NCBI GenBank assembly: GCA_001655205.1
Contig: LPNZ01006560.1
Span: 1-58,352 of the forward strand
Direction of reading: 5' to 3'
DNA from: Lenisia limosa
Lineage: Eukaryota > Protista > Breviatea
DNA length: 58,352 nucleotides
Shown piece after piece: positions 11,101 to 58,352 of this stretch. The notes beneath the pieces were generated by a model. It was not told where the DNA came from, made no database searches, and saw only the letters and a list, made by a program, of their open reading frames with translations. Made by a program: the position numbers and the translations under genes. Each line of letters begins with the position of its first letter. Position 1 is the first letter of the stretch.

Positions 11101-14100
11101 GGTTGCCTTACATCTTGCGACATTCGAGATATGGTGGAGAGAACTGTTAGCTCCAAGCACGTGACACCCACGACAATCTACAGTGTCAGAATACAAACTT
11201 AATCTCTTTAAATGGTAAAATAGAGTACCTGGAAGACACCAGCCAGAGTGACACTGACAAGCAGCCTTGTTTCTGACTGCCTCTGAAGATCGGACAAAGA
11301 CCTCTGTTTGGAATTAGTTCAGTTGCAACACTTTTTCTCAACAAATACTACGGAGATACGTACCTCAAAATCAGTACGCAGAAATAAGACATTTGTGGCG
11401 TATTTGTCGCTGATTGTGGCGTAGGCAGCCAGACGGGTCCCGCCAATCAAGGGGGCCACTACAGCACCCTAGTCAGTTAGATCTTGACTTTGTGTCCAAT
11501 AGCTTACAGTTTCTGGACACAGTCTTGTCTCATCATAGTCTGCCGATGAGATGAGAGAGGGAACAACCTGAATCATGAGCAACAAGTCCATCTTATCAAA
11601 TAATCCAACTTACAGTGGTTCTCTCGAAGACCAAAGCAGCGGAAGTCCCGGAATACGACTCTCCTTTCGGTGCAATAAGGAAGTCATCAGATGGGATGTT
11701 TTTGTCCTAGTGAATTAATACGGTTGCTGTTCAAAAAAGACACCACGTACAGGGCTATTAATTTGGTAGGTAACACATGCGTTCACAAGATTTGCATACT
11801 CTGCCTATTTGGAAATAAGAAAGTTGTGTGCACGGTGTTGTTAGGCAAATGATTGGGTGAAATAATAGCATACATCTCTTATAATCATGCGGCGTCAGCC
11901 AGATACTCCCATTCATTTCTACATATTATAGAAAAAGACACAAAATGTTAACCCATATCCACTAGTGATATGATCATATGACCGACTTTCAAGTCGAAAT
12001 GATGAACGAAGATAACACGAGGGTTAATCCCGAGTGTATCAGAGTATCATGAGACGCATCCTTAATCATCTTAAAGTAGCTAAGCAGTTGAAAGCGCCAA
12101 ACCTCTTGGAAGCTAAAAATTGTCCATGTCACCTTAATCCTGATTATATATATATGTCTATTTCCCATTCTGATTGTCCTACTTCCCACGGTAATCATGT
12201 TTTAACGAGTAATCTTGCATGTATTTAAATAGTAACCTCAATACACTATGTGGGTTGGGTTTCCAATGATGATGATGATTTACCTGCTGAAGTGGAAAAA
12301 AAGCTCGCTTGTTACATCAGAAATAAGGTTGCGGCTCTGGGTAATTCGGGACACTGTCCTCCCTTCTTTGCGTTTGCCGACTTTNNNNNNNNNNNNNNNN
12401 NNNNNNNNNNNNNNNNNNNNNNNNNNNNNNNNNNNNNNNNNNNNNNNNNNNNNNNNNNNNNNNNNNNNNNNNNNNNNNNNNNNNNNNNNNNNNNNNNNNN
12501 NNNNNNNNNNNNNNNNNNNNNNNNNNNNNNNNNNNNNNNNNNNNNNNNNNNNNNNNNNNNNNNNNNNNNNNNNNNNNNNNNNNNNNNNNNNNNNNNNNNN
12601 NNNNNNNNNGATTTACGCAGTAGTGGGGGAAAGTAGGGTAACCTAGCTGACGGTACCCTTCCTTACCTCTACGCACTCCCTAAAATGCACAAATCCCCAA
12701 TAAGCTTCAGATTCATCGCCGGCGGTAAAGATGTAATCGATTCCGTACCTTCTAAGCTTTTATGCTCCATGCTTACCCATATCGAGAGTACACTGCATGC
12801 TAAAGACCTTTGAATATTGCTTCATCTGGCCAACGCCGTCATATTATAACCCATTCTGCTGAGCAGGCTACACAACGAATTAATCATATTGGGACTGCTA
12901 ATTCGCTGTAAACATTTGATTTCTCAACACTTTATACCAAGTTCATACAGTCTGACCTCCTAAATGATGTTAAAGCCTTCACTCATATTTCTGAACGGGA
13001 TAACATCTCCAGTAACCATCTGAAATTATGTCTCAAATCTTGTCTAAATCTAATATCTATGATCTACTTCACTGGGTTGTTTCTAATATGTATTTTCATA
13101 ATGGTGATCTCACCTTTCATCAAACGGTCGGCCTACCCATGGGTACCAATGCAGCTCCTCTGCTCGCTAACCTTGGGCTGTATCGCCACGAAAGGGACTT
13201 TGTCTCGAGTCACCAGGACGACACAGTGATATCAACCTTCAACAACGCCTTAAGGTTTATTGATGATATTCTCTTGATTGACCTCATCATAGCTTCCATA
13301 AACATATTATCGCAACATCTGATGATATTGATCTGCAATTATCACAAACATCCGCTTCCACAACTGCAGTGGGTTATCTTGGTATATAGGTTAACATTCA
13401 TAGGAATCATATCAATACTTCAATATAAGATAAACGCAGGGATTTTTGTTTTAAAGTCAATCAATATCCACATATCCATTCCACTATTCCGAAACATATT
13501 GTAAAAGGTGTCTTGAACGGGTAACTCACGCGTAACGGTCGATTGTGTTCTCAACCGAGACACTTCGCCTACAACGCTGGTCGTCTCATCCGAACCCTTA
13601 ATACCAATGGATATAATCTTGCATCCCTCAAGAAATTAACGATATCGTTCATCTTCAAATTCAAGTTTGCATTTATGACACCCCATCGAACACAACTGAG
13701 GGCGCTTCTCCTAAGCAACCTCATCGGCCTCATAGACTAGGGGATCTCTCCACCTAGTCCAACAATTGAGCCACGTATAATTTGTTCTCCTTTGAGGACG
13801 TTATCAATATTTACGATAATATTTTCCAATAAAGCCTTTGATGTCTGCAATTCTAACTCTCTGGCACCTCCTGAATCTCTGGCATAAGACGGATTTAGGA
13901 GGGCCTACCTGGGTTATTATGCAGGGGCTATTATCCTTATTCATGAATCTAATCCTTGTAGGTATGCTGGGGAGGCACNNNNNNNNNNTCTATAGCAAGT
14001 ATTCAAATTTCAAATCCAGTTGTTGACAGATTTTTGAGATTTCAGTTTTAATGTTTAACAATTATACAGTTTTTGTCCTTTCAAAATCAATATTTTTTAA

Positions 14101-46732: not shown

Positions 46733-49196
46733 TCAGACTGTTGGCTTGAATACCTTGAGGAAGTTCATTTGGGACGCGGTTGCAATATCCTGAGGGTCCA
46801 CGGATTTAACCTACTAGCATAAGGAATCTGACTTCATATTTTTATGGTTTCAGAGTAGCCCACAATACCTCAGCAATGCTGGATACAACAGCATGCAAGT
46901 TCTTGGGAGTGTTTGACTTTTCTCTAAGAGTTGTGAAAGTTGGCCGTGCACCAGCTTACCTTGGCTTAATTGAATGGGGGAAAAGGAACGGTGCATCGGT
47001 CTCAACATGAAGCCGATCCAGTGGAATAATTCCTGGGGGCGTCAACTCAATTGAAGCAGTGCTGCTATTATACACCATGGCGATGATCAACAAAATATGC
47101 TAAGACAGCCAATAGCATACTTGTTGATTCCTTTATTGAAGCACTTCGATGCGGACGGTTGTCACAAATCATGCCTACATGATGAGGGTGGTAGGTGAGC
47201 GTAGAAGGGTAAACAGCACATCTCATTTCCAACCGGTGATTCCAATGTCAAGTCCAAGGTCAAGATATGCCTGTGCCTGGTGTCTTTCACCTGCTGTGTT
47301 ACACTGAGAAACGGAAGAGCATGAGAACTTACCAGAGAAGCAGTGTACAATTCCGGATACTCGTCCTGAGTACTCTTTGAAAATCTAAAGTATCATACAG
47401 CATACTCCAAATCAGGATTATTCAGGCATAATAGCATTCCCTCATACTTCAACAAAGTCATCAAATGCTTCCCTTTCGTGAAGAAAGAGGGGAAGCCCGG
47501 TTTCCACAGCCAAATCTAAGTGTTTCTTGAAGACTCTAAATGTATTAAGCAGATAAATAACCCAGATATGAAAACAGTGTCAACCTCACGTTTTTTGGAC
47601 CTCCTTTGGGGAAAACATTCGATCATAGTCAAGTCCACATTCACCTATGAAATGAATAACATGAGGTTCTTTGTTAAGGTTCATTTCATTAAATAACCAA
47701 AATCATTCATCCCTTTGCCTACCAACTGCCAGACATTGCTTGTGTTTGTAGAGCCCTCTCAACTTGCTGGCGGATTCGTTGTTCCATTTTGACGCATCAT
47801 GGGGATGGTATCCTGAATATTTGATCAACACAAGACAATTGAGTGATAATTCAAAATGAAGTTCTGGATAGAGCTCACCTGCTGTGAAATACAATTTTAC
47901 AGGGCTGTTTCGATTGTTGTCACAGAGAGTTCGGGCTGAATTACTGGAATGTTAGAGACGGTCGCATAAAATGGAAAAATGAAGAAAGGAATTCCAAAAA
48001 AATCAATTTATCAAAAAATGCTTTCTGAGTGTTAGTTATTGAATATTTATTAGATGGGTTAAAAAAACGGAAAAATGGCGGATTTTTTAATGGTAAAACG
48101 TTCACATTCATNNNNNNNNNNNNNNNNNNNNNNNNNNNNNNNNNNNNNNNNTTGTGAAATATGATAGAGTATAAGCACCAACTTACGATGATGGTAAGTT
48201 GGTTCCAGTAATGACGATTGTCCCAACACCATATCGTTTTGCATCCTTCAACACCTGAAGTTTTAGAAAAAGATGTGAATAAAATGACAAAACAAACATA
48301 TCCCATGTTGAAAAGAGAAGTTTCTAGTAAGGCTGAGAAAATGAATTAACTCACCTCCGGGACATTGTGCTTAAACGACCGGTGTGACAGATTGGCGCCG
48401 ATGTCAACAAGGCCCAAGAAGTCGGTTATTGACTCTGAAGATAAGTAACAAGGTAAAACAAAGGAAAAGGACACAGGATCACCATAATATCATCTTGAAC
48501 AAAGAAATCATCATAGTATATTATCTCAATGACTGCCCCACCAATAGAATCTGCACCCTCATAAGGATCACGTGGACGATGAGTGTGATGAGAAGGAACC
48601 TGGAATTGTGAATTAGGTAAATATTAAAAAAAAAAAAATCAAAAGTACCTCCTCTTGAGTAGGTAGTGTAGGTAATTAAAAAACGTAATTTATTTAAAAA
48701 AATTGATAAGCAAATTTACGTAACTTTAATAATTTTACGTAAATTTACGCGAGGTCCCGAAGATGTAGCTCAGAAGTGGTCTGGAAGATGGATGACTGGT
48801 TCGAAAATTTTTGAATCTGGTTTTTTGAAGTTTGTCACAATGAGGTTTGAAGACTTCCGGAAGTGAAAAAGAGGCATTTTTGGGCAAAACCACGCCAGTA
48901 GAATCGGCCCTTCCGGTGAAGACAGATCCGAAAACATTTTACAGTCATTTTCAGGGTTATAACTTGTCAACCACGAAAAAAATTCCGTCAAAATAGCCGA
49001 CCTCGGCATAGCATGCCGAAAATAAAAATCTCTAGGAAACATAATTGATATGGAAACGTGGAACTGCCGTAAAAATATACCGCCAAATTCTGCCGCAGTA
49101 ATGTGAAAACAGACTTTTATTTTTCCCCATTCCTCAAACCTTCTCTGTCTCGGCAGTGTCAGTAGACTTGGTGTATCTTCTAGGGTGATGGGACAT
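46733..49196 (-). CDS. tatD: TatD-family nuclease (amidohydrolase TIM barrel)
   Basis: LVDIGANLSHRSFKHNVPEVLKDAKRYGVGTIVITGTNL, YFTAGYHPHDASKW, LAVGECGLDYDRMFSPKEVQ, LPLFLHER, IPLDRLHVETDAPFL; stop at 46733. Confidence 0.9.
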
Positions 49197-49686
49197 TTCT
49201 ATTTCATTAGAAAGAAGAAAGAGGATAAGCGCTCTTGTAGAAGAAACATAACACAGCGTACTAATTTAATTCAGTGAGAGAAGCTACACAGCGAAATGAC
49301 TGGCAAAAGCTGCAAAATGGCAAAATGGGTTCAAAATTAGTGGAATATTGGAATAACGGAGATAAAATATTCCTTTTATTCCAGGGGGTGGTCCGAGCTC
49401 AGGGCGAATGGCGACGTCGGTTGTCAGACACACAAGCACCATCTTTTCTTTTATTATAAAATTAATGCGATGAAATGCAACCCCTTGCAACGCACAAAAA
49501 GCAAGACAGCGATAAAAAGGAGTAGCATTGTTTTTGAGATAGCTGTCACCCCCAGAATTTAAACCTTAAAAATCATTCCGAGAAAATACCGCTGAACCCA
49601 GAAAACCTTACTATGTAGTGATTTATATATACATATGAACTGCATGTAAAAGGAAAAAAGTCGGATTTAGCCAAAAGAAGAAGGAG

Positions 49687-52600
49687 ATGGAACACATCTT
49701 TCCTATCTCTTGTCTTCTTAGCCTTCTTCTCTTTGTTCAATTCGTGGAATGTCATTTTTATACATCGAGAGAACCAAATATTCTTGAGAACCTAGACTTC
49801 CTCTCGTTGCGTGCTGACCTTTCCACTCGACTCAATGTTCAGCCTCTCCACGAAGGCGCCAAGGACCCTGATAAACTGTGAGCTCTTCTAGGGAAATCAG
49901 GGTATTTCTTAATATTAAATATTGTGCTGAAGTGATATCCAAGAAGAGCACCATGAGCAATTTTGTTCTTTATCCAAATAGGCTTTATTTTTTTATTAAT
50001 TTATCTCCATATTTGAAGATGCCCATTTGACTGAAACGTTGATTGTTGGATTTCTAAATGACTACATCTTTCCGATTCCCCTGTCAACGATTTACATTGA
50101 CACGTCAGACAAGTGGCCTATTTTCTTGAGTTTGTGTCTGGAGATGTGAGCGGCTGGGTGACGGAGTTGACCGAAGGAATCATGGAGGTTTGTCAGTGTT
50201 ACCTGAGGCTTAGTTTTCTATTTTTGGTTTGTAGATCATTGAGTTTTGGGGAGGCTCTAAACCCCACCATCATGTTCATGTTTTGGAGGCTCTAAACCCC
50301 ACCATCATGTTCATGTTTTGGAGTCGCATGGCAGCACACTAGACTGCCGATATATCATATCATGAGATCTGAGAAGTATATTTACGATCCAGGCTCAAGA
50401 ATCTTTGAAGAACGAAATTCAGATCACCCAATACTCTTTTGTTGACTCACCGATGTTCATCCCGCTGTCCTGGGTGTCAGGTTACGTCACAGATTCCGAC
50501 GTCTTCATTGGGAGTTCCGACATTTTCACCGTTTCTTTCCGACAGGTGCGTCCGGGGTGCAACGAATTAATAACGTATTATTATCACTCAACATATCACT
50601 CAGCCGTATAAGTTTGGTATACTGGTTTCAACATGCTGACTTCATTTTTATGATGCAGCTTGCGGCCCAACACCCCAGCAAAGTCTTTGGTATATTTGGG
50701 CATACGGAGCCTTGTTGCGGCTCCATTCCAAACTATTTGAGGCTGGATGTAGCGCTATACGAAGCTCGGTTCCTGTCAGGAGTTATCGCTGCTGGTAGGA
50801 TGCGGGTCTGAATGTCTCTCATTCCTGTAGCCACATCAAAGACCCATCATATCGGTTACATTGCGAGCCATTTTTCAGATTATACCTCACGTACAAATGA
50901 TGCTTTTTTTCTTGGTTTGCTGGAAGGGGTTTTTGATACGAGATTTCTCATCTATTTTGTGTTTACCTTTCAGGGGTAGTTGTAGCAGACGAGTTTCTTG
51001 GAATAAATGGTCAGTCGCAAGTTCAAAATGGCTCAATGTAAGCTGCACATCTGGCTGTCATCTTTTTAGACTGCATCTTACCTATCTCAATATTGCTCAT
51101 GTTGCCGACCCTATACGTTTTGCCCAGGTGAGTTTGTCTTTCTCATAGTTGTTCCCCTGAGCTATAATTGATGACTCAATTTAGGCCTCAAGAGAAACGA
51201 TTAGAAAGTCCAATGTTGATGTGGTGGCCTTCAATGCTCTTGGTGATGATGTGGGTATCCTTTGTTTTGAAGGGGCAACTGACATGCCAGGTGTTTTATG
51301 TGGCTCTCGAGAATAACGTTATGGCTGTTGGGATCCATACAGATGCGAGGAAAGTCTTTGGCAAGTAGGCTGACACTATCAGCGTTTCTTGTGAGTGGAT
51401 GTGACGTTTCAGTTTCGTTCTGACGAGCGATCTCGAAGTCTGGGGGGAATACTTCAAGAACTTCTTCAACGCTGTGTTGTCTGGTACGATGTACGCCTAC
51501 CAAACGTCATTCAGCGACTACGGCATCACCGAGGTAGGCAAGGCCAACGGCTACAGTAATGCTGCGGATCGAGTAACTTATTCTTACAGGGGTTTGTTCG
51601 CCAAGCAACTTACTCAGATAAAGTGGGCCAAGACGCACGCGATTTAGTGCGAAGGTTGGTTGACCAGATGGCTATTGATTGTTTTGTGTGTTCTCATTGG
51701 CATTTTCTCATTTGGAAGGATCACTCTCGGCGACCCCTCAGTCTGCAAACAGCCCCTTCCATTCTGTGGAAGTCTCAATGACCGCCTTCCGTCCTTCCAC
51801 CCAAAGTCTCAATTGGGCTATTTTCACTCAAGACAGTCTTTCCACGAAAGCCTTCGTTTTGAGTCTGAAGAAGCGAGACAGCTTTACAACGTACCTGCTA
51901 ACGCCTCATCCGTTGAACCAGCGGGCGATTTCTTTGACGATTACGCAAAAATTTCCAATAAACTAATAGGTATCCTTTCCAAATAAATATAATCTGATAT
52001 GATGATCTCTTTTGTTTTGAACAGGATGTTCACTTTCTTATTTTTTTTCCTAATGACCTTGTAGTGGAACCGTTTGACATGCCATTTGATCACGTAGACG
52101 TCAGCTTCGTGTCTCAGGGCACGGCTACAGTGGGGAATGACTGGGGATCCTGACCATTTTACTTTGCTAATTGCTTTAGGAAAGTACCCTTCGCGTTATT
52201 TTCCAATGTTCACGCTTCCAATCCACCGATGTCATCATTTTGGTGGGTTAAAGAGTCCAGTCTATCTTAGGCCAATAAGCTTCTTCTTCTTTCGAAAGCG
52301 GTGACATTATAGGACCTCCCTCTTTTGATCCGAGCCGGGTCACAGCGGTTGGCCGTCACGAATATGAACTTTGATGGCAGTGTGGCGGTCTTTTGGCAGT
52401 CAACAGGAGGTGGGTGACAGGCGTGCTTTGGGCGTTGGAGCTGTTTTGTTACCGATTTAGGAGAGCTGGTTGTGCAGAGAGTGGGGGACGGCAGTGCTTG
52501 GCAGGTGAGCCCTCTGGATATCATTTCTTCATCTGTATGTTTTAAGACATTACTGTACAATCTGCCAAATTCCCCCAAATTCTTTGGATTGAACCATCAT

Positions 52601-55600
52601 AAATTTATCACTATTAGCAGCATTTCAGATTTTTTATGCCTCTAGGGTGAGGTTTATCTTGAAATCCTTGGGCTACGGGGGCCTCAAGGGGCAACAGATT
52701 GTCAGTACACCACCGTCACGCTGATGGCTAGTATCTTCGGAAAATGGGTGAAGAAGGTGAGGAAGAGAGATTGCTTGCTTTCTAATGCTTGAAATCGAGG
52801 TTACTCGCTTTCAATCACAATTTGTAGTCGGAATCAACCAGGGTAAAGATGCCTGAAGTTCAGGCATTCAACTTTGGATCTCCCTCGGTTCGTATTGAGA
52901 CCCCTCTTGTTGGTGCAACAACTAGATTGACGGTTGAAATGCTGTATGAGGTTGAAATTTTTGGACATTGTTAAATTTCTTCTATAACATGATTCCCTTT
53001 AGGTCTGAGTCAGTCCCGCCAAATACGATATTCACGTTCAAATTTCCACCAATGGTTGGCTTTTCGCTGTTTGACCATTGTCACGCATCTTATTATTATG
53101 ATATACCTTACGATTTGCTAGGTTTGTGGTTACAACGAGGATGAGTTTGGTGTCGAAGTCATTGGGTAAGGGGAGATGGGCTGTGTGCATACGTGAATTA
53201 GCTTTACCCAGGCTCATCTTGTAGACTGCCAGGCTTTGTTGACATTTTATCAGCGAAGATGGATACTGGTACCAAGTTCCTCGTGGTACGTTCTTTGCAC
53301 TTTTGCGACCTGCTTACTCCCAGGTGGATTTGCTCCGAAAAGACGCCACTGTTGTTACCCGAAACGCCGAACTGAGATTTGTGTTCCATGCGCTTCTTCT
53401 TTGCAAGTGAGAAGCTACTCTTTCATAAGGAAAAACCAGAGGCACGTATTTTGAAGTTCACTTGTGGAAACTGCCTTTAACGTGGTATTCTGACTTTTCC
53501 AGCCAATCATCTTTCATCGACACTGTGCTGATCGTGCAAAGGGCCTTCGATATCACTCAAACGGTTCGTTCAATTGTATCACAACCTAAAATGCCTCGTA
53601 TTCGTCTTAATCTTCAACAGCTCTATATTTCGGGATCCGGCGTTGTGAGTGGGTTGACGCTGTCGGACCCCTCGACTCCAACTGAATATCATATGGTTTG
53701 TTTAGTTGACTTTGGGGATTGGACGAATATTTATTCTAACGTTGTAGTGGGACTTCCTGGCTATGTTTGTGCTGATTGTTTCGATTGTCCTCTCGTCCAC
53801 CTTGGCATTCTACACAACTTACAACAAGAGAATTGTTTGGGGGATAGTTTAACGCAACACCAACGCCAATCTACCTAGTAATCATCCTGTCACCATGTCA
53901 GAGTTCGACCTTTGTTGTTAGGGGACGTAGAATACCGCCGATGTCTTCTGCAACACCGTGGAGACTGATGAAAAGGTCCTTCCCGTTGGTGCCGCATGAG
54001 AGACTAGAGTGGGGAGGGGTAGTCATTTTGGCTGAACGCAACAATAAGCTGGAGAAACAACAACAAAAACAAATCAGACACTTCTCTGTTGCTTACCTTC
54101 ACAGTATCCACATTCCATTCGGCGGAGTCACTGCGAAATGTATGGCCGGAACTTTGGTAGGATGGGTTGTCCGCATTTTCGTGATGGTGTGATGTTTGTC
54201 CCATTCTGACTGCAGGTGACGATAACTCCCTTTCCTTCCGATGCGGTTCCCGTCTTTGTGGATCTCTTGGTCGCTTCAATGAGCTCTATTGCGTAGGGGG
54301 TTGTGGCCTGGAGTGGAACCTTTGGAACTCTTATCAATACCACAGCATTCGGTACTCTGATTGATTTTCACAGCCATCCTGCTGCGTCACAAATATTTGG
54401 CTACACGCTTGCGCCTGACTCAACAATGAACCTTGTTGAAGAGCGACTTGTGCATTGGCCAAATCTGGCATGTCTTGTGGCTGCTGATATTCAGGCGACC
54501 GTGTCATTGACACCACCTGCGAGTGAAAAGGAGAACTATGGTGAGCTTGGCTGTTTTGTCAGGTCATCTGAAGAGCTTAACGAATAAATGCCATGGTCCA
54601 ATTTCCAGCGATTTCGGATTTCTTTCTCTGATTTGTCAGGACCCATGGTGCGGCATCGAAAGAGCGGAAGGGGCGGAATTGAAGTGTCCAATAAATGTTG
54701 GTAGCCTTTCTTGTTACCATTATCGCCATACCACCTAACCGTTGCAGCCGCACTACCCACTATCCCAGCATCCCCAACTGTCAACCCCATCTCCACACTG
54801 GATCCAGGCAGCCCCATCAGCCTCAACCACCTTCCGGGACGGTAGGGGTGCCATGGGGTCAGTCTGATTGTTTAGGTCTTTGCGGCTTGAAATGATCCTA
54901 CATATTGCGTCAGATGTGGCTCAGTATTTGGTACGCCTCCACCAGGGGAAGGGAGAAAGCTGGGAAATGGTTCTTGTTTCTTACTTCCCAGAACGCCCTA
55001 CACTCTGTTGGAATTTATCATGGAGCACTATGCACGGGAAACGTTTTCATCTGCGTCCCTGAAACAGATTTGGGGTAGGAGAGGATGGCTAAACAGCATT
55101 TGGTTGGAGTTGAATAATTGTTAGTTAATTGTTGGTTTGAATTATCAAATGGTTTCCTTTGACTTTCAACTCTTTGCATGTGCTGGACCCGGATAGAGCG
55201 TCTATATACATACATACATGTACATATTTATAACAGGTATTTATTCCTCCTTTAGAAGCCCGAAAGATCAGGGTTTTGTCTCTATTCCTGACTCCCTCAA
55301 ACGCCTTCATGACTTGTCCCCGGGCATCATCCCCGATAGGTGGGTAGGAAATTGCTCTTCATTTAAAGGACGAACAATCATGAGTACCTTTACGCCAATA
55401 TTGTTCATCGAAAATTCCTTCGTTTTACNNNNNNNNNNNNNNNNNNNNNNNNNNNNNNNNNNNNNNNNNNNNNNNNNNNNNNNNNNNNNNNNNNNNNNNN
55501 NNNNNNNNNNNNNNNNNNNNNNNNNNNNNNNNNNNAAGACTCAAGAGAAGAGCCAAGCTCACTGCTGACCAGGTTGGAGGTTCAATTCTTGGCTCTTACT

Positions 55601-58352
55601 GACTGCCCAGGTGTATACCGACATTATATCAGTTGCACGTTTGATTGTGGACATGCTTCGTGGAACTGAAGTTTCTCGAGCCTTCCCTCAGCTGCCCCTG
55701 CCGCCTGTCTTGCCTCCTCCCGGTATGCCTTCTTCCACTTTCAACCTATTACGATCCAATTGGACCGTTGTCACTTCTTAGAAACTGGAGCACCCATCGT
55801 GAAGAACGGCTGGCTTGGTCTGCCGAATCTTGGCGTGAGTTCTCATGTCCTTTGTAAGGGCCTCACGTTCTAGGTGTGGCTTCCTCCCTCTCTTCCGGAC
55901 TCCCTCATCAACCTCCTTGAGTCATGCGCATCGCCCAACTCAAAGATTACAATGACACAGGTGGCAACAAGGCTTCAAAACTCCAAGTGAGTTGGACGGT
56001 GGACTACCAGAATGGCCGATTTTGAATTAATGAAATGGAATTGATCCTTCAGGCGGCAAATGGCAGTGGAGCGTCATGCTGTGCGCCTCAATGAACAGGT
56101 GTGTACGGGTCAAAGGTGTTTGTTTTATCAAGGCTTCGTGCCGAAGAAAAACAAAACAATGTCCACTTGATCCATTGATATCGATTTTCACTCCGATATT
56201 GATGGATCAAGTGGACATTGTAACAATTATCATACTGTCAGTCTGTAAGTCATTTTGATCTTCTAGGTTCTGGAGAGAACAGCCGAACTGCGGCACAGTG
56301 AAACTACAGCAAGACGATTCTTGGCAAATATTAGCCACGAACTGGTACGGTCCTTCTCTTGTCTTCTGATCTTTAGCGGACCCCCCTGAACGGTGTCCTG
56401 GGTATGACGGACCTTCTGATAGACACCGGATTCCAGGATGAGCAACAGGCACACTACGCCGGTGTGGGGGATATCTCGGACTCTTAGGATGATTCGTGCG
56501 TTGTCTTCATATTCATCATTGAATGCTCACAGTTAAACGGAAGGTTTTGTTCGGATCCACATTTAGACAAGTGACACTGTAGATGTCATTCGAACTTCCG
56601 GACAAGCTCTTGAGAGGATCCTTAATGATGTCCTTGACTTATCCAAGGTATGGATGAGTGTGTTGAGTAAGCTCGAAATTGGATCTGTCGCTTTCTTACA
56701 ATCGATAAGAGCTTGAATCAGAATTGACCCTGTAGTACCACGCGTCCAAGTTTGACTTATGCCCCCATCGAATGGGAATACGGTCTACCGTGGATGAGGC
56801 CGTTCGGATCTTTTCACTAAGGTGAGTGTTCTTTTTCTTCATAAAACATGACCCATTTTCGGCTTGAGAGATTGGTTCGTAATTAGGGCTTCACTTCGGT
56901 TCGAAAAAAGACTAAATTTCTCGATAAATCCTAATGCATTAGGGCTGAAGAGAGGGGAATCCGATTAGTGGTGCACATCGACAGTGCAGTGCCCGAGGTA
57001 AGGCTATTAAAGGGGTTCAAATGTGATTTCTGTAGGACGTATTCGGAGACGCTGGAAGGGTGAAACAAGTCATTTGTAACCTTCTGTCAAATGCAGTCAA
57101 GTTCACTTCCTCGGGTTTGTGGTCATCGTTATTTTCGTTTTCTATTATGTTCCTGGTGTATCTAAATTTTGCTCTTAGATATTTGTGTAACCTGCCCCTT
57201 TAGGTGGGTCAGTGCGAGTGGATGTAACGCCAACAAATGTCCCCTATGCCGCGGAGTCCTACTCGGTTGGTGCACCTTGGTTAAGATAGTCTCCACATCT
57301 CTGCAAAATTGTGCATATCATACGACAAGAACCACACTGTTTAACCTTTGACTGTTTAGGGTCCGCCATCAGCTGAAGCCTGTCGTAAGTTGGGGATCTT
57401 TGGGGTGTACATACATAGCTTTCTAAAACAAGTACATGCATGTTCAAAACAGCAATATTTATGTGTTTTTTTGGTCTAAAGCCCTTATCATTGCTATTCA
57501 GGCGACATGTGTCCCCTTCCCACCTCCATGGACTGCGGTCTCTTCTGCCCTTCAAGCCCTGGTGAGTCGAAATACGGTCCTGTTCTCATGGCTGCTAAGA
57601 GCTCACTGTTTTGATGAGCCTCGTTTTTCTCTACACAATAATGTTTTTTTCAGTTCATGTAATTCCGTTTTACTCCTCAGCATCACGATGTCGTCACCTT
57701 TCTTTCACGGACGAACCAAAAGTTGGCAGTTTTTTTAATGTGAATGATTTTCATAACTTTGTTACAAGTTTTAAGTGTAGTTACCCGCCAACGCAGTGAC
57801 ATTTTAGACTGCACCCACTCGGCGGCGATGTGTGTCGGGTGTACCGCCTCTCAACTCCGTCACGCTCCAAAGCCTCCGCACTTTAAAGGTATCATCCTGG
57901 CAATTCAAAGAATGCATTAACTTCCCGCTGCTTCTCACTTACCACATTAGGAAACCCGAGTTGACACAGCAGCCTGGATGGAGAGCCCATTTCCAGCAGA
58001 GCCCGATTCCGATTTTGATAGTCAACAGGCCACTTCCGACACCTCTTCCGACAACTCGGAGTACCCCATGGCTCGGCTGGATATTGAGATTGACCCCCAG
58101 AGTGAAACCTCTTCCAGTGCTGGTACGTCCTTTTGGTCCTCATGGTTCTCTTGTTCGTATACTCCATTTGTGCTGTCACCCTCCACTCCACTGCTCTTGT
58201 TTTTCATAGTGATACGTTGTATTTTGTTCATCCCCTCCCCTCCCCTCACCCCGGGTTGAAAATATAGTATCATAAGAAACATGATTTTTCAAAAAGTGGG
58301 CGCGGTTTTGTTGGTCCACCTATATAATATATATATCATATATATATATCAT
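49687..58352 (+). CDS. Receptor histidine kinase: signal peptide - BMP/PnrA-type binding domain - beta-rich ectodomain - TM - TKL-like pseudokinase - S-helix - HisKA - HATPase (3' end beyond window)
   Basis: Signal peptide [22 protein letters not shown]; BMP motifs [24 protein letters not shown]...[34 protein letters not shown]; [24 protein letters not shown] (53748-53815); kinase-fold motifs at 53960-55990; VLERTAEL...FLANISHEL|[14 protein letters not shown]...[10 protein letters not shown]; N-box [21 protein letters not shown] (57036-57105). Confidence 0.85.
50245..50322. repeat. ~36-bp perfect tandem duplication in an intron
   Basis: gaggctctaaaccccaccatcatgttcatgttttg occurs twice in tandem. 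Confidence 0.85.
56884..56932. mobile_element. Truncated second copy of the 35926 hAT-type MITE, intronic
   Basis: tagggcttcacttcggttcgaaaaaagactaaatttctcgataaatcct closely matches 35926-35974; no TSD is visible. Confidence 0.65.

Follow-up and report, generated by a model that had tools for sequence, protein, structure and literature searches.

A predicted Lenisia limosa receptor gene joining a BMP-type ectodomain and a pseudokinase to a histidine-kinase output

Does the end of a Lenisia limosa contig encode a single transmembrane receptor in which a dead protein kinase fold links a bacterial-type extracellular sensor to a histidine kinase? The question was raised by a first-pass annotation of contig LPNZ01006560.1 (assembly GCA_001655205.1), whose full 58,352 nucleotides (nt) make up the window analyzed here, and it concerns positions 49,687 to 58,352. 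That annotation had read one spliced frame from a signal peptide to the N-box of a histidine-kinase ATPase domain, and we were able to reproduce it. From a start codon (ATG) at 49687, the spliced order is a signal peptide, a BMP/PnrA domain, a further ectodomain, a transmembrane (TM) helix, a kinase fold, a signalling helix (S-helix) with the ERT signature, HisKA, and the N-box of HATPase_c. One receptor gene is the best explanation overall, and we regard it as probable; our confidence is held at that level because the histidine-kinase output is incomplete. The parts of the gene are as follows.

49687 to 49877, plus strand: exon 1, with the start codon, the signal peptide (hydrophobic peak at residues 4-22) and the first ~40 mature residues; donor GTGAG
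50109 to 51654, plus strand: BMP/PnrA-type (PF02608) ligand-binding domain, 10 exons, assigned by profile matches
51655 to 53695, plus strand: further ectodomain, fold not assigned, provisional exons from dynamic-programming models
53748 to 53834, plus strand: single TM helix, then NKR; strongest hydrophobic peak (2.51), canonical splice sites
53902 to 55339, plus strand: kinase fold from the N-lobe to the activation segment, 9 exons, ~70-residue insert before alpha-E; assigned by hhalign and hmmsearch
55429 to 55535, no strand: assembly gap, falling inside an intron or where the next exon starts; phases compatible
55536 to 55986, plus strand: kinase fold from alpha-F to alpha-I, 4 exons, assigned by alignment to the kinase profile
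56053 to 56300, plus strand: S-helix with the ERT signature (VLERTAEL), 168-nt intron within; read directly from the sequence
56267 to 56821, plus strand: HisKA/DHp with the phospho-acceptor His (ANISHEL/RTPLNG), 4 exons, three of which match Pfam HisKA
56943 to 57265, plus strand: start of HATPase_c, comprising a linker, the N-box and the next strand; Pfam HATPase_c match
57360 to 58122, plus strand: Cys/Ser/acidic-rich continuation, exon structure uncertain, from dynamic-programming models

The window DNA is eukaryotic in character and contains many short introns throughout. Transcript evidence came from a polyA RNA run of the same study as the DNA run, which yielded spliced contigs. These confirmed 17 introns on the contig, 12 in an upstream TatD-like gene and 5 in the receptor gene, and all 17 had the form GTNNG...YAG (GT-AG with G at +5 and a pyrimidine before the AG), with lengths of 34 to 540 nt. 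When introns seen or modelled on the contig are counted together (n = 32), every one is 32 to 540 nt long, ends in YAG, and has G at +5. The receptor gene was modelled by applying the GTNNG/YAG rule together with splice-site matrices and hand checking, and its 5' part was taken from matrix-based dynamic programming. Under looser rules, a dynamic-programming model ran through introns and overlooked junctions confirmed by RNA, and the GTNNG/YAG rule was adopted in its place.

Under this rule, the region from the TM helix to the N-box comprises 22 exons, all with GTNNG donors and YAG acceptors, and a single open frame runs on either side of the assembly gap. The joins previously read from TRLQNSK through VLERTAEL to ANISHEL/RTPLNG were reproduced exactly, with the phospho-acceptor His present, whereas some of the earlier exon limits proved wrong (e.g., 54297-54373 is an intron). 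Only two hydrophobic peaks are found in the model, one for the signal peptide at residues 4-22 and one for the TM helix at residues 648-666. Exons up to 51654 were stable across model settings, whereas those in 51655-53500 varied between dynamic-programming models; the exon chain in this interval is provisional and may involve a non-YAG acceptor at 51718. The further ectodomain that it encodes (51655-53695) had no Pfam match and no RNA contig.

We compared the spliced ectodomain with a Bmp profile built from 101 open reading frames (ORFs) out of 120 fetched metagenome loci bearing the hallmark DDKSFNQSA; all three of the template ORFs tested were Pfam Bmp. The ectodomain matched this profile both in hmmsearch (18.5 bits, E = 4e-8) and in hhalign (92%, E = 6e-7, 248 columns spanning both lobes), whereas shuffled sequences reached at most 4.7 bits in hmmsearch and an hhalign score of at most 20.4, compared with 55.0 for the real sequence. 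When the exon at 50659-50793 was queried on its own, Bmp was carried by 88 of the 100 nearest Atlas clusters (top score, 0.92). A second BMP exon had no Atlas support, single BMP exons had no Pfam match, and a BMP exon searched by tblastn against plasmids gave no match, while a representative-protein search with a 51-residue BMP exon returned just two repeat proteins, which scored via many weak stretches. The DDxSFN motif of Bmp proteins contacts the ligand. Only the D and the S of this N-terminal motif are kept in the aligned stretch (GDVSGWVTE), and this altered stretch may point to a different ligand.

For the cytosolic domain, the spliced sequence from our own splice model was used to query a kinase profile built from 74 bacterial Hanks kinases. 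The hhalign match was 83.7% (E = 8e-6) and rose to 92.9% (E = 3.8e-7) when the ~70-residue insert was removed, and the 96 to 145 confident columns spanned alpha-C to alpha-F. Among 200 shuffles the highest score was 24.5, versus 46.1 for the real sequence. In hmmsearch, 8.7 bits were obtained at alpha-E and the catalytic loop, and none of 2,000 shuffles exceeded 1.3. Beyond the gap, one stretch of 16 residues aligned to sDIYSMGVVMYEMLTG and another, of 12 residues, to the alpha-H region. The kinase-fold match that the first-pass annotation called for at 53960-55990 was obtained by hhalign on the spliced domain, with single exons giving nothing.

Across the full alignment, the kinase motifs are changed from VAVK to VTIT, HRD to HGA, KPQN to CTGN (the Asn is kept), DFG to DLG, SPE to SPG, and DIYS to DIIS. 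The HRD-to-HGA change lies within the confident part of the alignment, whereas the VAVK-to-VTIT change lies within the low-confidence N-lobe part. Judged by its sequence, the fold has lost its catalytic base and is a pseudokinase; the VAIK lysine also appears to be lost, replaced by Thr. The domain order and the dead-kinase call made earlier are supported computationally.

Other routes to kinase homologues were less productive. E. coli YegI and its relatives were a poor kinase seed, and profiles alone worked; a word-indexed homologue search with a 96-residue kinase ORF gave no candidate, a pairwise phmmer comparison with a PknB gave no match, and five kinase or BMP exons searched against PDB gave no kinase or BMP match. 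Within the domain, the kinase exons at 55280-55312 and 55888-55920 share a 33-nt stretch (76% identity, 11 residues each), attributable either to chance or to an old internal duplication. Elsewhere in the window, an ORF piece at 12028-12225 (plus strand) gives a weak match, of 5.8 bits, to the kinase profile's N-lobe, and a VKIADLGIA motif occurs at 48999-49013 (plus strand) inside a 540-nt intron of the TatD gene; both of these kinase-like stretches may be due to chance.

Downstream of the kinase fold, the ERT signature (VLERTAEL) sits between this fold and DHp and precedes the His by ~20 residues; only ~45 helical residues lead from the kinase fold to the His. This signature has been described for the S-helix, which joins sensors to histidine kinases and receptor guanylyl cyclases (PMC1592074). 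No cyclase domain follows the S-helix in this gene; HisKA follows instead. Three consecutive exons matched Pfam HisKA in order (positions 3-13, 14-39, and 43-62), with scores of 13.5, 21, and 17.5 bits (52 bits summed), and the His of the H-box is intact (SHELRTPLNG). The N-box exon matched positions 1-21 of the 111 positions of Pfam HATPase_c with 17.6 bits, which taken alone is below the gathering score. Within the region encoding DHp, the modelled 88-nt intron at 56648-56735, where there is no RNA, holds an in-frame LEIGS; if two non-canonical splice sites were used there, the second DHp helix would regain the iEaGk that usually follows DLSK.

Do the pseudokinase and histidine-kinase parts belong to the same gene? 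The kinase C-lobe is separated from the S-helix exon by a 66-nt intron (55987-56052) with a donor of 8.2 bits and an acceptor of 11.2 bits, as scored by a matrix derived solely from introns that RNA confirms. Both sites exceed the 95th percentile of the background (7.8 for donors and 8.0 for acceptors), and the phase is kept across the intron. These splice signals, the phase continuity, and a distance of ~70 nt, which is too short for an intergenic region, argue when taken alone that the locus is very probably a single gene.

Several observations nevertheless weigh against a single, complete receptor. Left unspliced, the kinase frame runs into a TGA at 55987-55989; at 56059 there is an in-frame ATG. 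No RNA contig crosses the kinase-to-HisKA junction, and RNA covers only ~400 nt of the receptor gene. One acceptor is hidden in the gap at 55429-55535, for which no bridging read or contig was shown. The alignment confidence of the N-lobe is low, and since single kinase exons have no match in Pfam, PDB, or Atlas, the kinase call rests on our own splice model and the bacterial-kinase profile. Finally, a motif scan up to the window end at 58352 found no G1, F, or G2 box and no receiver motif, the window ending within or ahead of the part of the kinase where those boxes would lie.

The first of these observations could be explained by two adjacent genes, with a BMP-TM-pseudokinase receptor ending at the TGA within GTGAGT at 55987 and a soluble histidine kinase beginning at ATG 56059 (MAVERH...): both the stop and the ATG are in the sequence, and the junction is spanned by no RNA. 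However, the ~70 nt from stop to start would offer no space for a promoter and for the formation of a 3' end, and an in-frame stop within a GTGAGT donor is commonplace. The 66-nt stretch is moreover a textbook intron for this contig, given its splice-site scores, conserved phase, and branch-like TTGAT. A histidine kinase starting at the S-helix would also be sensorless, whereas S-helices nearly always lie between two signalling domains (PMC1592074). We therefore consider two genes to be quite unlikely and retain the single receptor gene.

The RNA itself confirmed five junctions in the receptor gene, three in the kinase-fold part (54540/54640, 54696/54748, and 54841/54876) and two at the start of HATPase_c (56821/56943 and 56997/57036). 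The single transcript expected across 53700-57100 is supported at these five junctions, although none of them lies between the kinase fold and HisKA. RNA contig depth was 2 over both the kinase and the histidine-kinase parts, equal and low, and the receptor gene was not found in further RNA runs. On its upstream side, the receptor gene is flanked by the TatD-like gene.

46960 to 49384, minus strand: TatD-like nuclease gene, with a 1062-nt RNA contig and 12 GT-AG introns of 42 to 540 nt

Since the RNA of this gene stops at ~49384, ~300 nt from the start of the receptor gene, ATG 49687 opens a divergently transcribed gene.

The assembly gap raises the separate question of whether the two sides of the locus belong together. 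A high-copy repeat at 55383-55428 abuts the gap (word depth, ~5,550 versus ~42 for unique sequence), and a related high-copy repeat at 56884-56932 (depth, ~55,000) lies inside the RNA-confirmed intron 56822-56942; the DNA-run contigs break at both repeats, although the one covering 55536-56906 appears to reach ~73 nt into the gap. The repeat beside the gap and the contig breaks there would fit a chimeric scaffold, in which two unrelated loci were joined via a shared repeat, but each side carries half of one kinase domain, and these halves complement each other without overlap, in the same orientation and order and with compatible phases. Such a chimera is highly improbable. Phases agree across the gap: the exon preceding it (55256-55339) closes in phase 2 (AG), and on the far side the frame fixed by kinase homology calls for two bases ahead of 55536. 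To the left of the gap are the kinase subdomains as far as the APE-equivalent (SPG), to the right alpha-F to alpha-I, in order, and since the loop joining the two halves already exceeds the usual length, the gap is expected to hide little or no coding sequence. The join across the gap, which the first-pass annotation had ranked among its less certain ones, gains support from the fitting phases and the ordered kinase halves, but its acceptor remains hidden and the gap unbridged.

Repeats of other kinds occur in two introns of the receptor gene. The predicted intron at 50188-50392 contains a near-perfect tandem duplication of ~35 nt (ggaggctctaaaccccaccatcatgttcatgtttt) at 50235-50325, and the 168-nt S-helix intron contains an inverted repeat at 56156-56221, with 28-nt arms that are 93% complementary and a 10-nt loop, which could be a small foldback element.

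How complete, then, is the histidine-kinase output? No ORF piece in 57166-58264 matched Pfam HATPase_c or Response_reg, and past the N-box strand the sequence is rich in Cys and Ser and low in complexity. With the last 1.1 kb devoid of G1, G2, receiver motif, and Pfam match, the gene could be a single one whose output is degenerate or truncated; the ATP-binding domain would then lack G1 and G2, leaving DHp with only a scaffolding role in dimerisation or phosphotransfer, or else the locus would be in decay. Yet the H-box and N-box are canonical, and the models carry the open frame, with canonical splice sites, through Cys/Ser/acidic-rich sequence to ~58122, shortly before the window ends at 58352. 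Long inserts between the N-box and G1 are, moreover, common in eukaryotic hybrid kinases. A degenerate output is unlikely on this evidence, if somewhat less so than two genes.

For the single receptor gene with a working histidine-kinase output, the following mechanism can be proposed. The product would be a type I membrane receptor that exposes a BMP/PnrA-type Venus-flytrap and a second ectodomain outside the cell and crosses the membrane by one helix; in the cytosol, the dead kinase fold would lead through the ~45-residue S-helix into the DHp helix, with its His, of a class I histidine kinase. The receptor would act as a dimer. Closure of the BMP lobes on a ligand would send a signal through the membrane to the pair of pseudokinases, which would serve as an allosteric relay in the manner of the kinase-homology domain of receptor guanylyl cyclases. 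The S-helix coiled coil would then shift its register and turn His autophosphorylation on or off, and the phosphate would pass to a receiver lying outside the window.

How the kinase-homology domain transfers a signal to a dimeric output is still debated for receptor guanylyl cyclases. If the proposal is correct, a natural receptor with a histidine-kinase output would show that the pseudokinase/S-helix relay is independent of the output, and His autophosphorylation would provide an easily read assay. It would likewise link a eukaryote-type kinase fold to prokaryote-type two-component signalling, a pairing that a survey of S-helices found to be nearly incompatible, cyclases excepted (PMC1592074), and it would show that bacterial BMP sensors serve eukaryotic receptors other than those of the Dictyostelium Grl family. 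More speculatively, the pseudokinase and S-helix might form a portable transmembrane relay that is both older and wider in distribution than the animal receptor guanylyl cyclases, with this protist carrying a family of BMP receptors whose shared sensor and relay feed different outputs, a natural domain-swap series at the S-helix; we put this forward as a tentative idea.

How does this layout compare with known systems? Bacterial sensor kinases of the BvgS/EvgS type resemble the receptor in having a periplasmic-binding-fold sensor, a helical linker across the membrane, and DHp/CA; they differ in that their sensors are periplasmic-binding protein (PBP) type II domains, in that they have no kinase-fold relay, and in being bacterial. 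Animal receptor guanylyl cyclases (NPR-A/GC-A) are alike in layout: their ectodomain has a type I periplasmic-binding fold, a lone TM helix follows, and then come a kinase-homology domain that is dead, an S-helix bearing the ERT signature, and a catalytic output that is dimeric (PMC1592074). In contrast to theirs, which is ANF_receptor, the ectodomain here matches Bmp (PF02608) and is followed by a second ectodomain, and the output is HisKA/HATPase instead of a cyclase. Bmp and ANF_receptor are both grouped in one Pfam clan, CL0144 (PMC3251606).

A eukaryote-type kinase-like domain and a histidine kinase also occur in one polypeptide in Dictyostelium DhkG (whose kinase-like domain is predicted to be inactive), fungal group X, and cyanobacterial HstK-type proteins (PMC1420674, PMC6324907). 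These are cytosolic and have an N-terminal kinase-like domain, with GAF and other modules before the histidine kinase, whereas the Lenisia gene encodes a signal peptide, an ectodomain, and a TM helix and brings the His to within ~45 helical residues of the kinase fold. BMP ectodomains, in turn, are found on the Dictyostelium Grl (class C G-protein-coupled receptor-like) receptors and their Allomyces homologues (PMC3251606). Like the receptor described here, the Grl proteins are receptors of eukaryotes within Amorphea and sense the cell exterior with a bacterial-type BMP domain (PMC3251606), but their output is seven-helix and G-protein coupled, in contrast to a single TM helix, a pseudokinase, and a histidine kinase.

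Narrow, exon-level database searches gave no close relatives for the two exons tested, and no description of the BMP-TM-pseudokinase-S-helix-histidine kinase layout was found in the literature searched. The earlier suggestion of novelty applies, as far as these searches reach, to the full layout but not to its elements, since both inactive kinase domains joined to histidine kinases, as in DhkG and fungal group X, and BMP receptor ectodomains were already known. Taken together, these comparisons indicate that the layout, alone of the features compared, appears undescribed and that the Lenisia gene is credibly a new arrangement of known modules in a draft genome.

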